From assembly GCA_000708835.1 (NCBI GenBank), contig DF236997.1:217608-281607 (forward strand): a DNA stretch of 64,000 nucleotides, read 5' to 3'. Source of the stretch: Klebsormidium nitens (taxonomy: Eukaryota; Plantae; Klebsormidiophyceae). Under the pieces are notes generated by a model that worked only from the letters and a program-made list of their open reading frames with translations, made no database searches and was not told the origin of the DNA. The position numbers and the translations under genes are program-made. Positions 8,301 through 17,633 of this stretch are shown piece by piece; the stretch's first letter is position 1; every line of letters begins with the position of its first letter.

Positions 8301-11300
8301 AGTCGTTTTTGCTGGGAGTGTATGCACCGCTTCTTGAGGCCTCAACATACCAAGCGCTTTCCTTCTCTCCCCATCTCTTGTCCCTGTCACTGTCTTCTTA
8401 TCCGCCCACCTTCTTCTGTGCCCCAGGGCTGCCCCCCTCGCGCGCGGCCATTGCGTACTACACCTACAACAACAGCACGGACTTCCCCCAGTTCAACCCG
8501 GACGACACGTCTAAAGTGCTGGGCCGCGCCGCCATCGCGCCCTTCTTCTACCGCTACGGCGTGAGCGTCAACGCGAGCGCGCCCTACGCCCTGCCGCAAT
8601 ACTATGACAACTCGCTCTTCTTCTTTGACTGGTTCCGGTGAGTCAAACAAAACCTGCTTTTGATTCAGAGTGGCTGATTGGTTTGGAAGTTTGGTCTCCC
8701 CAGTCTTTGTTCAATTTCATGCGGTAGCAATCATGGTGATCATGATCGTTTTTCAAATGTTCAGACTGCCTCAGACTTCCTCGCTGCATTACAAGTCTAG
8801 TGTAGATCTTGGTTTGTCACCTGTCTGAAAGCTTGTACTCAAGTAACTCTGTGTGAACACGACTGTTGTCTTCTTTCGGCCCTGTTACAAACGCAGCGTT
8901 CTGCTCCCTCTGCAGGGACTATGCGCGGCTGCTCAAGATGGACAGCAACGGCACGCTGCTGAGCATCACCAAGCTGTGGCCGACCTTCTCCTGGAAGTCC
9001 GTCATGGACATGGCGATCGCACCCGACGGCTCACTCTACATCATTGAGTTCGGGGACGGCTTCAACCTGATCGGCGCGCAGCTAAGCCGCATGCGCTACC
9101 TGGGCGCGCCAAACCCCATCAGTTGCCAGGTGGCAGCGACATCTACCTCGGGGCAGGCGCCGCTCACGGTCAAGTTCTCCACAGACGGCACCACGTCCAG
9201 GTGAGCGGCAAAGCGGGGGAACGAATGAATTTCTCGGTGAATGTTCGAGTGAATGTTCGAGTGAAGAGTTCGTGGTCGTTTGGGGCGCCTAGTCGGAGAA
9301 CCGGTGCTTCTGATGCTTCTGATGCAGTGGAATGTGCTTTGCGCCTATTTGTAACAGGGGGCTTGGGTCAATAACAAAAACCCAAAAACAAAAAGGGTCG
9401 CGAAAGTATAGATTATAGGGAGGACGACACGTCACGCATTTGCGAAGGCTGTTTTCAGAAGCGAACCGCAAAGATGCGGTTGAGCTGCTTCGAGTCATTA
9501 AACCTTTTCCCTAGCCCTTCAGGTCCCTGATAGTAGGTCTTGGCTTCTAAGCCTGACAATTCTCATTTGCAGCGACGGGCTTCCGCTGACGTACTTCTGG
9601 GACTTCACCTCCAACGGGACCGTCGGCGCCACCAGCGCGAACCCGACGCACACGTACATGCGAGAGGGCGTCGCGGTCGCGACGCTAACGCTCAAGTCGT
9701 CGAAAGCGACAAAGTCGTGCACGGTGCCCATCGACGTGGCGTCCAGCCTCAACAGCCCGCCGCAGGTCACAGTGGATTATCCGTTCGAGGGGGGCATCTA
9801 CACCTGGGGCGACGTGATCGACTTCTCGGTGAGCCTCCATTGACTTCGGTTCCGACCTTAGCTCCGTATCAAGACTCAGGATTGCATGTGAGAAGCGCTT
9901 TGATTTTTTACCGCTTCAGGGAATGCCGTGAAAATCGTATACATCTAGTCGGAAGCTTCGCTAGTGCCGTTGCTGAGGAGCAAACGCGACGTGCATCTTT
10001 ATCAACCTTCTTTCCTGCTTCGTCGAGGAGCGGATACAGATAGGCAGTCTTTAGCGGCCTCCTCCTGTACCCTGATGCGATTCTGGATGGGCGCAGATCC
10101 AAACGGTGGAACCTCTCAAAATCCTAGTGGTAAAATCCTGTTCATCTCACCCTTTCCTACTCCTGTTCATCTCACCCTTTCCTCCCCCCCCCTCCCCAGG
10201 TGTCGGTGATTGACAAGGAGGACGGCAGCACAGCGGACGGCGGCATCCCGTGCTCCAATCTGCAGGTGACACCTGGCCTGGGCCACTGCCCCGGCCGTCT
10301 GGCGCCCTGCCACGTGCACAACAGCATTGCCAACTACGCGTGCAACGGCACCTTCGGGCCAGTCGAGGACGAGCACTCGTGGGAGAAGTTCTACTACTTC
10401 GTGCAGGCGCTCTACCCCGACCGGTAAGCACCCACCGGAGGCGGTTTCTAGATTGCGGCCTTCGCGTCCATGAGCAGGTCCTCAGTTGGGAGACTTCCAT
10501 TGCGTTTCCACTTTCTGCCAGTGGTTTTCCGCGCGTTCAACGCTGTCTGGGCTTTGTATGTTACGCGCTCTTGTGTCCAATCTGAGGTCTCTTCTTCTTG
10601 TTCCCGCTTCGTGTCTGGCGCAAGCGGATGCCATGATTGTCTCGTGGTATCGTTCTGTATCGAGTCTTATTTGTCGACGGGGCTCCGTTTGTGGCCTGGG
10701 TTCTCTCAGCGGCAGAAGGAGCAACTACATGCGCTTGCAGTACTCAATAAAGTAAATCTTGAGAGGACCAGGTTTCTTGCCATTCGGTTTTGCCCTCGAA
10801 GCTGGGAACTTGCAACGTGTCAATCTCCGCATCCCCTTCGTCGACAATCTGACCGCAGTGTTTGCGTTTCTCTGGTGCAGCGGTGGTGCCAACGGCTCCG
10901 CCCCCATGATCGGGCTTACGTTTGCCCAGCTGAAGCCGTCCGTCTGGCAGTTGGAGTTCTTCGATGGCTCGGTAAGCACTGCTGCCATTTGCAACCCTGT
11001 CATCTGACATCATTCAGGAAAAGGGTGCACACCGTCTAAGCATGGTCTTCTTCACTGAAATCTGTGTCTACGCCGCGTTTTGTGGCGTGGCCAGAACAAA
11101 ATGCAAATGCATCGGGCCTTTCCAACTTGCAGTGGGCGGAGGTAAAAGGAGCCTTTGACATTGCCCTTGCATACCATATTCTCCTGGCTGTCTGTTTAGC
11201 CCATCTGCTAATGTGTCCCCTTCTACCCAATCTGCAGGTTGAAAGCCCCGTCTGCTGACGTGCCCTCTTGACTTCAAAGTTAGAGCGTAGGATGGACCCA

Positions 11301-13540
11301 ATTCCGGAGGAGTTCAAAGCCCCGTCTGCTGATGTGTCCTCTTGACTTGTTTCTAATCTGGACCCCATCTTGCAGAGTTCCAACGCCACGGGGGCTACCC
11401 AGACGACCAAGGACACGATCGGGGGTGGCCTGGACGTGTACGGGTTGAACGACGGCGACTGGCTGCGGTACGACAACTTCAACATGCTCAACATCGACAG
11501 CATCACCTTCCGGGGTTACAGGTATGGCCCCTTCTCTGCGATCGGCCAACGTCTGCTCTAATAACTTTGTCGTTGGAGGATGAGTTTGAAGCTGCACGGG
11601 GTTAGAGACGATCGCTGAAAGGCAGGAATCAAAATAGGTCGGTGGAGCGATCCTTTGAGCCCGAAAGAGACCGTGAAGAGCTTTGGTTTCGCTGACTCCA
11701 AAAGGCACTGCCTGCCCGGATCCGTGGAGATTCCGTCCCTAATACGTAGCTGAAGCTAGCGCCGAAGATTTATTCCCTCTTGACCATAGCTGCTCAGGCA
11801 TATTATATCAAGGCAGTGTCCCCTATGAGACACAACACGTGTTCCTGCTTCGATCCCCCTGTTACGGTCCCGCCGATTCCCTAGAGCCTCTGCTTACCTT
11901 TCTGCAGCGCCTCTGGCGGTGCGTTCATCGACGTGCGGATTGGGTCGCCAACCGGGCGCATCATCGCCACTGTGCCCATTGCTGCAACCGGGGCGGGAAC
12001 ATACACTGACTTCCAAGTGCCTATCCAGGACACCAACCAGTGGTTCATGGTAAGGCCGGACGGGCTTTAATCTGGGCTCTCGCATTGGCGTTGAAAGTGG
12101 CACAGGGTTTTGACCCATGTGCATCTTGTCGTAACGTATCCGCTTCGGCACGACTTATTTCGAGTCGCTGTTGCATTTGACCAATGAACCAACGGGCAGC
12201 TATGCAAGAACTGCTCGTCAATAAATCCTGACATTGTTTTCCGCTGTTTAGCAGCCATTCTTCGCGAAGCACCGAAATCAGCGGGCTTCCACCTCAGCAT
12301 CGGCAGCCTCCTTCCCGGAGATCCGCTTGCTTCTCGCAAATTGCTTCCCGTAAAGTTTAGAGACTCAACTCTGACTCCAAAGTTCCGTGCCCACGTGTAG
12401 GTGGACATGCAGTCCGCGTGGACCATCTCCTGGTTGCAGCTAGACCCCGGGCAGTGGGCGACCGACTACCTGCGGGGCTACGCCGTCTTTGCGTCGCTCG
12501 ACAACTCCACCTGGGGCACACCCATCATGCCTCTGGCCACGGTACGAACCACGCGTCCGAGCAAGAGTTTCGTCTCCTTGCTGGGGCTTTACAGGACGTT
12601 AGATGGTTCAAGAGGAAGAAAATCTTTTCGAAGGCATGCGGGGCATAAGAAGCCCTTGTTGAGCGTCTTCTTTCAGTGTTCTCATTCTTTGGACTGTGTC
12701 TTTCTATACAGTCTGGGACGCAATGGCAGTGTGGCTAGCAGAATTCAGTGACGTCTTGCATGGTCGTTGTTGTGGCAAGCACGCCGAGCAAGCACTGCTG
12801 AAGTGTGCCTTCTGGTTGTTCTGTGAAGTACTTCGAAGTGACAAGATGTCGAGGGGTGCCAAAAGCTTGAGCGCCTCATTGACTACGCCTCTTGGTCAAC
12901 TTCTTGTCGGTTGCTGCCTATGCTGACAGATCCAGTCAGGTTTTGTTTGACGTCAGGTGTCGATCCAGCAAACCGTCTCAATCGTGACAGTCATGTGGAT
13001 GATGGAAGATACGGCGTACAGGCGTTTCTGAAAGCAACGATCACTTGGACGCGTCCACAAGTTAATAGATTGCTTCGCTTCTGACAGGGTAACCCTCCGC
13101 CATACACTCTCACCAACGGGACTGTGGCGAAAAATTTCACGGGTGTCATCAACATCACGCTCAATCCCCCCGTCAGCGCCCGGTTCATCAAAATCATCAA
13201 CATCGGGCCCGCAGCCAATACGTCGTGGTGGTCAGTCGCCGAGTTGCGCGCATTTGATGACAAGAATGTGAGCCTAGGAACCGCAAAGTGGGTCGCAACA
13301 GCGTCGTCGCAAGCGTCGGACACGCCACCTCAGCAGGCTTTGGATGGCAACATAACGAGCCGGTGGGCCACCGGGGAGTCCCAACGGCCGGGGAATGTGA
13401 CCTTGTATACCACATTTAGATCGGCGGTTGCGGGCGCCAAGAATCTGTTCGTCCTAAATTATATGACCTTCAACGGTCAAGGAATAAGCACGACGCCCCA
13501 TGAGAAGGGAGTTCCGCCACCAGTCAGCACACAGTATTAG
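2382..13540 (+). CDS. Secreted multidomain protein: signal peptide + ThuA-like + PQQ-dependent glucose/sorbosone dehydrogenase (GSDH beta-propeller) + PKD + CBM6 with inserted permuted F5/8C (CBM32-like) module; 17 exons, ~1251 aa
   Basis: Exons 2382-2836, 3689-3868, 4615-4915, 5328-5427, 5971-6179, 6729-6817, 7211-7375, 7810-8117, 8427-8637, 8916-9200, 9573-9828, 10200-10423, 10881-10971, 11376-11521, 11908-12049, 12401-12541, 13088-13540. All are GT-AG and phase-consistent, totalling 3756 nt. Motifs: hydrophobic N-terminus; Thu[14 protein letters not shown]...[23 protein letters not shown]; [70 protein letters not shown]; PKD LTYFWDF...NPTHTY; CBM6 [10 protein letters not shown]...[10 protein letters not shown]. 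Confidence 0.92.
11226..11390 (+). repeat. Tandem ~70-bp duplication in intron 13 echoing the acceptor/exon-14 start
   Basis: aaagccccgtctgctga(c/t)gtg(c/t)cctcttgactt at 11242-11274 and 11316-11348. Each copy is preceded by a variant of the true acceptor context (acccaatctgcag.., gacccaattccggaggagttc.., true gaccccatcttgcag|agttcc). Confidence 0.7.
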
Positions 13541-14946: not shown

Positions 14947-17633
14947 ATGGCAGCCCAGAAGGGAGAACGGCAGCACACCGCCGCAGATCACCCAGTGGCG
15001 CCAGACTCCTCTGAGCAATATGAGATTGTTCTGTATGGAGCTCAGACTTGTCCCTTCAGTCAGCGCGCTAGAATAGCGGTCGATTCCAAGGGGCTCAAGT
15101 ACGAGTACAGAGAGACGGACCCATATGCTAAGCCGGAGGATCTGCTGGCGCACAACCCCAGGGGGGCGGTGCCGACGCTAGTGCACAATGGTGAGGGACA
15201 ATCAAACTCAGATCGACAGTGGTGTCAACGGAGTCCAACTTCTAGTTTGGTGCATGCATGAGATACAGCAGCTTTTATGACAATGTGCTACATGCGGTGG
15301 TCACAGCTTTGTGCAGTAGTTCGTGGATCGGTCTGGGTTCTTGTTTCTCAAATCAACGTAACCTTGAGTTTTGGGCGCTGCAGCTCGCTGGCTAAAATCT
15401 GCTTTTAATGCGCTGATATGAATTCCCCATTGATCTAAGTCATCTTTGTGGGGTAGCTGCTGCGATTGGTTTCAGTGGTGAAAGAGCTCTGGCGATCAGT
15501 ACCACAATCAAGAACAGCATTGCACCTTTCTGATGCTTAACTTCTGAAATGGTGGTCATATGTGGCCAGGCTGACTTTGAGTTGTAGCAATAGATTTGAG
15601 CTACTATAGTTTGTGGGTTGCCAAAACGAGACACATTCAGCGTAGAATTATAGAAACATAACAAAAAGTGGGGCGCCCGCGTGGATTTTGTCAATTTCGA
15701 GTCAGCTTAAATCTCCTGGAACATCAACAAGTCCGATTCTTTCTCGTGTATTGTTCAGCTTTGGTTTTCTTTCCACCACGTCAATGACCACCGTGTCCCT
15801 GCAAGCGTTGAAGTCTTGGATGCTTGAAAGCTGTATCAACTATTATCTGATCTCAAGCATTGAAGAGACATTCCAGGTCGCATTCGAGTCCAATGTCACG
15901 TATTACGAAAAGGCTATAGAGAGAAGCAGAAAATCAGCCTCTCCTTGTTTGGGCTCTCCTATTAAACTTCACATCTTTAATGTTCCTCAGGTAAGAGCGT
16001 GTACGAGTCGCTGGTGGTGGTGGAGTATGTGGACGAGGCTTGGCCAGGGGACGTGCACGGGCCGACTCTTCACTTCCTTCCGAAAAGGGACGTGCACCTA
16101 CGGGCCCTGGCCAGGATCTGGACGACATTCGTCCAGGTCAGCACCGGCGGTCCGAGCAGAGAGCTAGAATATGGCTCGGATTTAAATGAACTGTTTCAGG
16201 GCAAGGTTCAGAGAACCGTTTTAGGAATGGCTACCAGTCTCTGGTGGAAGGTCAATTGGTTTGTTCTCTTTCGAAGGTCTTCTGCGTTGTGAAGAGGTCA
16301 ATTCGGCCGGACGTGGTTTAAGGCGTCCCAGAGCACGGACTCATCGTTCAATTCTAATGGGCTTTGTTGGAAAGCACTAATTTCGGCTTGTCACATCGGT
16401 AAGCAGATACTCAGCTGTGCTCCTTTGAGGAGTGCACTTACAATCGAGACTCCAGCCCACCTTCTTGGAAATGGAAACCAAAATATGTGGAAGCCACTAA
16501 AAGCCCAGGACCAGAATGCTGAAAGCCCAGGAAAAGCACGGGACCTAAGTTTAAGGAAACTGTCGTCGCTGCCTCTCCTTCTGCCCTGAAGGCCAAGTTT
16601 GCATCATCGTCAACCAGTCATAGTGGCAACATGTTTCTCTCCTTTGTAACGAAGGACGAATATAGTTATAGTTCGTCGTCATGTGCCGCAAACTCCATTC
16701 CGGCCGACCGCTTACCTCAGGTCAATTGGGGGGCACTTGATTCGGAACAACTTCGAAGTCACTTAACCAGCGACACTGAACGCGAACTTCAGAAAGGTTT
16801 TTGGCTCCGCCTTTTGGCTTTTCCTGTGTTACCAGCTCACGGAGATCTCCGCCTCCTTGTTGCAGGATAAGCTGGTGCGCGGTTTCTTCGACTTGTTAGC
16901 AGCTCAAGACGAGTCGGAGCAGGAAGCTCTGAAGACGAAGCTGCTCGACAGTCTGAGAGAGTGGACGAAAGCGGCCGCTGAGATCCAGTCGAGCCCAGCA
17001 TCGGGGCCGTTTTTCATGGGCGAGCACTTTGGGATTGTAGACATCGCCTTCCTGCCCTTCGCTGTGAGGTACGAAGTGGGCTTGGCGAACTGCCGTTACT
17101 TGATTTTGAACTGAGGGACGAAAATGCGAGAGACTCTACGGGGGGAAAGAGAGCGGGGAAATGGCAATGCTTTGGTAAGCCGCTGTGGGATTTTGGTTGA
17201 AGGTTAGGGCTGTCGGATTGACTGCTGATGTGATGGTGATGTCGGGAGGCGGCATGTCTCTGAGAGCTCTCGTCAGCACCCGCCCGGACAATCGGTTCTC
17301 ATTCTCACGGCTCAGCAACTGTCATTCCTGGCTCACTTGATGGCATTACGAATCCACAGATTTTTCGCTTTAGCCTAAAGGTGGCTCCACTGAAGGAGCC
17401 GCTCTTCGACCTTGTTTGACAATCTGCGTGACCGCACACTCTGCAGATTCCCGGCCCTCGAACACTACCGAGGGTTCACAGTGCCGGACACCGACGAGTT
17501 TGCAGTCTACCACACATGGTTGAAAGCAGCGAGCGCGTTGCCCAGTGTTCAGTCAGCTATGCCCTCCGAAAAGGAAGTGATCGACTTCTATTCGAAGTAC
17601 GCCAAACGTGACGCCACGTGGAGAGAGCCATAG
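14947..17633 (+). CDS. Glutathione S-transferase, Cys-active-site (omega/lambda-like CPFS motif), 4 exons, 259 aa
   Basis: Exons 14947-15190, 15991-16136, 16866-17068, 17447-17633 (780 nt). Motifs [59 protein letters not shown]. Confidence 0.92.

Follow-up and report, generated by a model that had tools for sequence, protein, structure and literature searches.

A probable circularly permuted F5/8 type C domain nested in the CBM6 domain of a sugar-dehydrogenase gene from the alga Klebsormidium nitens

The 64,000-nucleotide stretch of the Klebsormidium nitens genome analysed here (contig DF236997.1 of assembly GCA_000708835.1, positions 217,608 to 281,607 of the forward strand; referred to below as the window, to which all coordinates belong) contains, on the + strand, the 3′ part of an intron-rich gene for a secreted-type protein composed of ThuA, PQQ-sugar-dehydrogenase (GSDH) and PKD domains. 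The last five exons of this gene very probably encode a CBM6 domain that holds a rotated F5/8 type C (F5/8C, discoidin) domain in the hairpin loop before its last two strands. In the resulting composite unit, the part corresponding to positions ~40–130 of the F5/8C profile comes first and the part corresponding to positions 1–40 follows it. The spliced translation consists of the CBM6 N-part, the F5/8C C-part, a linker, the F5/8C N-part, the CBM6 end and a tail, and the insert extends from 12038 (Q of QWFM) to 13393 (G of QRPG). The features of the region are as follows.

10881 to 10971, + strand: exon with the CBM6 start (VWQLEFFDG from 10942), defined by RNA joints and spliced translation.
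11376 to 11521, + strand: exon with the CBM6 N-part (to ITFRGY), ending in phase 2; Pfam CBM_6 profile 8–50, RNA joints.
11908 to 12037, + strand: continuation of the CBM6 N-part, to VPIQDTN at the receiving loop; Pfam CBM_6 profile 56–91.
12038 to 12049, + strand: four codons opening the insert (QWFM), from the F5/8C strand usually preceded by PG; the profile break lies at 37–40.
12401 to 12541, + strand: exon with the F5/8C C-part (VDMQ...PLAT); Pfam F5_F8_type_C profile 40–79, RNA joints.
13088 to 13258, + strand: F5/8C C-part up to its normal C-terminus; subfamily profile 37–130, E 1.4e-21.
13259 to 13288, + strand: 10-residue linker between the former C- and N-termini of the domain, a homolog of the linker that separates repeats in tandem arrays.
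13289 to 13393, + strand: F5/8C N-part (WVATAS...QRPG); Pfam profile 2–34, subfamily profile 3–41 with E 4.7e-11.
13394 to 13477, + strand: last two CBM6 strands (NVTLYTTF...), matching bacterial CBM6 C-ends and the structure model of a homolog.
13478 to 13540, + strand: 20-residue C-terminal tail and stop codon, with a G-x-G-I/V-S motif common to bacterial relatives.

In the DNA itself, the four expected segments are present on the + strand in the order claimed by the original prediction, all introns are of the GT-AG type with consistent phases, and the spliced frame is open to the stop codon at 13538–13540. Logan RNA contigs of ~4 kb from four runs belonging to four studies contain the same exon joints in genomic order with 0 mismatches, among them 10423|10881 and 10971|11376; they also join exon 10881–10971 and three further upstream exons, and no alternative exon order was seen in them. 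The QWFM codons form the 3′ end of exon 11908–12049, and the last exon comprises 13088–13540. The four-segment nested order is thus borne out by the DNA reading, the RNA joints and the Pfam matches of the individual exons. Of the insert span proposed earlier, 12032–13393, the end stands, while the start has to be moved to 12038; the permutation junction does lie within one exon, as had been suggested, both 13258 and 13289 belonging to the last one.

The rotation of the discoidin domain was examined with a hidden Markov model (HMM) of normal order, built from 125 repeats of bacterial tandem arrays. The window protein gave two matches to this HMM, one of positions 37–130 at spliced residues 374–486 (E 1.4e-21) and the other of positions 3–41 at spliced residues 493–531 (E 4.7e-11); the later part of the profile precedes the earlier one, and the strands do not follow the normal F5/8C order along the chain. 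At these E-values a chance result is excluded. Control proteins gave a single match each, covering positions 1–130. The swapped pieces were also found in the intronless homolog P0024, in the K. subtile protein P0390 and in the protein P0267 of the testate amoeba Pyxidicula operculata, with a break near position 40 throughout. The two pieces are complementary and together make exactly one domain, with nothing doubled and nothing absent, which is what an F5/8C domain opened at PG|QW, with its C-half set before its N-half, had been predicted to give; two independent complete domains were not seen. Pfam searches with the last exon revealed two F5_F8_type_C stretches, the best of which covers profile positions 2–34 with 35.3 bits (cut-off 28.2), and this match, together with the subfamily HMM, places the domain in PF00754. 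The single-exon matches to PF00754 and PF03422, searched piece by piece as the original prediction had proposed, agree with the assignment of the segments.

The CBM6 domain is not continuous and is split at 12037/13394. Pfam CBM_6 matches to the window exons taken singly reach 21 bits each, below the cut-off of 28.9; the spliced window protein matches an HMM of 57 CBM6 sequences with E 1.6e-16, and the homolog P0024 matches PF03422 with 85.4 bits. When 57 uninterrupted bacterial CBM6 domains were aligned to the nested proteins, they aligned up to 12037 and resumed after the insert, and all rows together placed one residue inside the insert columns; the loop T-x-P-x-G of the bacterial domains corresponds to DTN...G of the nested proteins. 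Comparison of the 33–35 residues after the insert with 381 non-nested proteins revealed matches to CBM6 C-ends of bacterial ThuA-GSDH-PKD-CBM6 enzymes only, including the tail motif F-x-G-x-G-x-S, so the segment that had been taken for the missing CBM6 end is orthologous to the CBM6 end of the bacterial relatives. A generic CBM6 HMM tends to run on into the first discoidin strands, which explains why the CBM_6 match that Pfam reports for P0024 (residues 910–1008) ends at profile position 98, having started at 1, and overlaps the F5_F8_type_C match (residues 991–1102, profile 23–126); the discoidin N-part and the CBM6 end of P0024 are unreported in the Pfam output.

AlphaFold modelling was conducted on the module of P0024, which is 42% identical to the window protein over the module and has no indels at the junctions. 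Once the number of F5/8C rows exceeded six, joint MAFFT alignments misplaced the CBM6 rows onto the discoidin domain, and splitting the CBM6 rows was no help; the two families could not be aligned together, and therefore two family-rich alignments were used for one prediction each, a CBM6-rich one (A3, model 1) and an F5/8C-rich one (A4, model 2). In model 1, the CBM6 parts have predicted local distance difference test (pLDDT) values of 81–98, including residues 250–276 (~95). A Foldseek search with this model revealed a template modelling (TM) score, normalised by the target, of 0.87 to 2v4v and 1gmm over 273–276 alignment columns, compared with only 0.67 for matches that used the N-part alone; VIA-align superposed residues 1..276 of the model on 2v4v with Z 22.0 and a root-mean-square deviation (rmsd) of 1.3 Å over 126/129 residues, and on 1w9s with Z 22.0 over 129/134 residues. 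In the model of this homolog, a complete CBM6 beta-sandwich is thus built from two separated segments, the outcome that had been expected of an AlphaFold check. CBM6 matches still span residues 2..277 in model 2, even though hardly any CBM6 rows were present in its alignment.

The discoidin part of model 2 has pLDDT values of 73–98, which fall below 83 in a single ten-residue block, and its N-part (residues 210–250) has values of 88–98. The discoidin domains of CBM32 proteins, galactose oxidase and sialidase align to residues 104–205 of model 2, the targets being covered from 39/51 to their C-terminus; the superposition on CBM32 4zz5 has Z 8.7 and an rmsd of 2.0 Å over 92 residues, that is, over the C-terminal two thirds, as given by a sequential aligner, and the same two thirds superpose on 1gof and 2j1e. 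A missing N-terminal third in a sequential alignment is, for the predicted structure, what a permutant must give. The expectation of a discoidin fold with new termini is therefore partly supported in the homolog by a confident model and by the superposition of the C-terminal two thirds, whereas the N-part is judged by its pLDDT.

Several points weigh against reading the region as a permuted domain nested in CBM6. The generic CBM6 HMM scores the short C-part alone marginally (E 0.03–0.1), the models are of P0024 and not of the window protein, and the F5/8C N-part is placed by its pLDDT, by the complementarity of the sequence pieces and by the absence of the N-terminal third from sequential alignments. 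In addition, the searches turned up neither a bacterial carrier nor an intermediate, such as a CBM6 holding F5/8C in normal order or as a tandem pair, so that the route and the place of origin stay inferred.

The order is shared by other proteins. A HMMER search with the last exon against 1.84 billion representative proteins yielded a list of matches consisting mostly of bacterial tandem arrays, with the alignment starting in the C-part of a repeat and ending in the N-part of the repeat after it; a few of the proteins listed continue into the CBM6 end. At least six carriers, only 27–69% identical, keep the order and both junctions, the common form of which is DTN | Q-W/F ... Q-R/Q-P/N-G | strand. 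The carriers other than the window protein are listed below.

P0390, Klebsormidium subtile, transcripts: 69% identical to the window protein.
L002, metagenomic relative, eukaryotic: 53% identical, intron positions as in the window.
P0024, intronless gene on the compact contig L001 (Logan ERR12814418).
L018, metagenomic eukaryote (L018:3742-7774, JGI 3300010052): intron-split sister of P0024.
P0267, testate amoeba Pyxidicula operculata: nested unit at residues 1030–1336.
P0063, short fragment.

In a tree of the dehydrogenase (GSDH) region with 126 rows, the carriers form one clade with a Shimodaira–Hasegawa-like approximate likelihood ratio test (SH-aLRT) value of 97. This clade lies inside 122 other ThuA-GSDH members from databases and metagenomes, bacterial wherever the source is named, and the nearest bacterial relatives of the carriers have an uninterrupted CBM6. 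Pfam searches found GSDH and PKD among the exons of the window itself and ThuA on the homologs P0024 and P0267 alone, and P0390 shares the upstream part, its GSDH region having been aligned and included in the tree. Both the domain order and the tree placement assign the protein to the ThuA-GSDH-PKD-CBM6 enzymes; the gene is of bacterial ancestry and is expressed in the alga.

A search for the same nested order in bacterial homologs, which the original prediction had proposed as a means of dating the event, returned none across genome, protein and metagenome searches. The last exon, used as a query against bacterial and archaeal genomes, had no relative there, and a scan of viral contigs with the P0024 module was likewise negative. 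A metagenome scan with a three-sequence alignment gave 15 loci, all of them normal-order arrays or a CBM6 followed by arrays and none nested, and a shape search of the ESM Atlas found no cluster covering both domains, the highest TM score normalised by the query being 0.40. Two candidate bacterial carriers, P0191 and P0373, were rejected, the two domains lying side by side or not being nested; P0056 and P0064 had alignments extending beyond the second junction and proved to be ordinary tandem arrays. In the bacterial metagenome contigs L006, L007 and L012, an ordinary CBM6 is directly followed by a tandem F5/8C array; the partner domains are thus already adjacent in bacteria, in normal order.

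The carriers differ in what surrounds the unit. In the Pyxidicula protein, several thrombospondin type 1 repeats together with a membrane anchor come after the nested unit, and the amoebal enzyme presumably sits on the cell surface; P0024 has instead a malectin domain and another CBM6, of the ordinary kind. In the K. subtile protein, ~20 additional residues (~1268–1292), rich in Ala, Ser and Pro, are situated in the loop between the last two CBM6 strands, a second place in CBM6 that tolerates insertion. L018 has short introns at places other than in K. nitens, one between the PKD region and CBM6 and another inside the discoidin W-W-S strand, where the open reading frame (ORF) stops after ...EDTW; given these differing places, intron gain seems to be independent across lineages. 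P0024 is adjoined on its contig (L001:1-5600) by eight compact genes on both strands, of which only one matches a Pfam family; one neighbour is similar to hypothetical proteins of eukaryotes (parabasalids) and to a GT11 family by language-model features. If P0024 came from a bacterial host, bacteria would possess the nested module.

The origin of the nested order can be approached through the insert, which aligns end to end, with 40–48% identity, with segments of bacterial tandem arrays running from mid-domain to mid-domain. It is 143 residues long in P0024 and 153 residues long in the window protein, and the period of the arrays is 131–139. The consensus of the linker between array repeats is L-x-R-x-G-W, and the linkers at the internal junction are ALPRKGW in L002, ELNRAGW in Pyxidicula, ALPRTAW in P0024 and SLGTAKW in the window. 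The colinear mid-to-mid alignment and the retained linker motif indicate that the insert is one array period taken out of register; the origin from a tandem F5/8C repeat, one of two sources proposed by the original prediction, is supported by the same evidence, and the other, a circular DNA intermediate, is not needed. In such a mechanism, one repeat-length of a bacterial-type tandem F5/8C array would have been taken out of register and placed in the CBM6 loop, and the former inter-repeat linker would now tie the old C-terminus to the old N-terminus. Both ends of the insert would come from the same cut loop (PG|QW) and hence be adjacent, which would suit them to insertion into a hairpin. The introns of K. 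nitens do not flank the insert, one of them lying four codons inside it, and the P0024 gene is intronless, so exon shuffling is not indicated.

It is possible, although the odds are somewhat against it, that a single recombination pasted the out-of-register slice, that the permutant was made in this one step, and that whole-gene transfer then spread the composite among unrelated soil and freshwater eukaryotes (streptophyte algae, arcellinid amoebae and other protists). If true, this would be a natural route to permutation without duplication in place or trimming of termini. A normal-order F5/8C domain inserted first, followed by tandem duplication in place and loss of the outer halves, is an unlikely course of events. 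The N- and C-termini of discoidin domains are adjacent in the fold, which makes a normal-order insertion sterically easy, and the retained linker motif fits either route; however, this course takes three events against one, the insert is exactly one period long with no leftover fragments, and no normal-order or doubled insert was present among the matches of the HMMER, word-index, metagenome and Atlas searches.

The assignment of strands to the two domains admits a different arrangement, in which the domains are sequential with swapped strands: the CBM6 sandwich would be completed by the first two F5/8C strands (QWFMVDM... and ISWLQLD), and the discoidin domain by the last two strands. In HMMER and BLAST, CBM6 alignments do run on into the first strands of F5/8C, and those of F5/8C continue into the final strands; the strand patterns are hence loosely interchangeable. 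Nevertheless, such an exchange is very improbable, since both AlphaFold models, built from different alignments, put residues 250–276 in CBM6 and 104–124 in the discoidin domain, the final strands, with the F-x-G-x-G-x-S tail, show specific orthology to the CBM6 ends of bacteria, and the first strands of the insert fit the tandem-array consensus QWFQVDMG.

Judging from the family context, the composite unit is likely the terminal part by which a secreted or surface enzyme that oxidises sugars would be anchored to a glycan. In the alignment with 1w9s, the motifs NIGW and TGGW are seen, and we take them to carry the tryptophan pair of BhCBM6, the aromatic pair of the loop-side binding cleft. At the corresponding places the window protein has DVYGL and ATGA-GTY, without the tryptophans, which are also absent in K. 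subtile, L002 and Pyxidicula; P0024 keeps both. The sugar bound by BhCBM6 lies stacked between a pair of tryptophans (PMC6272582). The discoidin part of the window protein retains all eight residues whose conservation in the tandem-array subfamily reaches 90% or more; with these residues kept and the CBM6 tryptophans lost, the discoidin part would be the likelier binding site in the alga, and CBM6 would serve mainly as a scaffold. Judging from these residues, we expect one working site in the alga, on the discoidin part, with CBM6 as its holding frame, and P0024 may have two sites. Of the nested two-site unit originally envisaged, the nested two-domain architecture therefore stands, and two sites in the alga are doubtful, the CBM6 tryptophan positions having been lost.

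The loss of the aromatic pair in the alga, as well as the single-exon Pfam scores of three of the four pieces, which are below the gathering cut-offs, would also fit a scrambled, non-functional remnant, in which three partial domains remaining from a rearrangement form a disordered tail of the enzyme. This explanation is hardly credible, considering that the order and both junctions are kept in the diverged carriers, that the near-invariant discoidin residues are retained in full, that the models of the homolog are confident and that the region is transcribed and spliced in frame. An artefact of assembly or of the gene model can be practically dismissed, as RNA contigs of four separate studies join the exons without mismatch, the intronless P0024 gene shows this order within one ORF, and the K. 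subtile and Pyxidicula transcripts agree on it.

The next ORF downstream in the window (14947–15261, + strand) starts with a thioredoxin-like/glutathione-S-transferase (GST) N-terminal pattern (YGAQTCPFSQRARI...VPTLV) and is probably the first exon of a neighbouring GST-like gene.

The nested unit is a legible natural case of the origin of a permutant, in which the type of donor, the linker and the length of one period can be read from the sequence, and the permuted product is conserved and expressed. Automatic annotation hides the nesting, as Pfam presents a truncated CBM6 beside a truncated F5/8C. For research on carbohydrate-binding modules (CBMs) it offers a candidate rigid two-domain binding unit, and for protein engineering a natural precedent of a permuted binding domain inside a beta-hairpin. 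As a rare shared character, it sets apart a eukaryotic clade within a bacterial enzyme family and could help to trace gene transfer among algae and amoebae.

A literature search on permuted discoidin, CBM32 or CBM6 domains, or on nesting in a CBM, found no description of such an arrangement. Natural circular permutation and domain insertion are already known, and the permuted discoidin domain nested in CBM6, as deduced from the sequence, appears to be a variant not found described. Among its closest counterparts, the bacterial ThuA-GSDH-PKD-CBM6 enzymes (P0207, P0219, P0312 and P0347) likewise have CBM6 after PKD, with 41–49% identity in the N-part, and share the end motif L-F-N-x-N-W...F-x-G-x-G-x-S. 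The structures of the CBM6 family PF03422 (1w9s, 2v4v and 1gmm) have the same beta-sandwich as the P0024 model; in the nested proteins, unlike in these, the chain is broken before the last two strands by a domain of 143–153 residues, and the alga is without the NIGW and TGGW tryptophans. The F5/8C subfamily with the D-Y-P-R-G-Y motif (P0105, P0001, P0151 and P0166), which forms tandem arrays in bacterial GH5 and other enzymes, is 40–48% identical over the whole insert; in contrast to F5/8C/CBM32 domains (PF00754), the insert is rotated, has no free termini and contains the inter-repeat linker as an internal element.

Natural circular permutation is represented by the 1,3-1,4-beta-glucanase of Fibrobacter succinogenes compared with the Bacillus lichenases, by swaposin and by CBM20/CBM21. 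As in natural permutation by tandem duplication, a beta-sandwich or jelly-roll here tolerates termini in a loop, and a tandem repeat is the likely source; unlike the known permutants, the nested one is embedded in another domain, and the donor linker is still recognisable. An engineered CBM21 permutant has also been reported (PMC3511584). The present arrangement resembles insertions of the PA14-in-GH3 type in that one domain is placed in a surface loop of another and both are predicted to fold. Such nested insertions, PA14 inside GH3 being an example, occur in carbohydrate-active enzymes; the K. nitens unit differs from them in that the host is a small binding module and the guest is circularly permuted.

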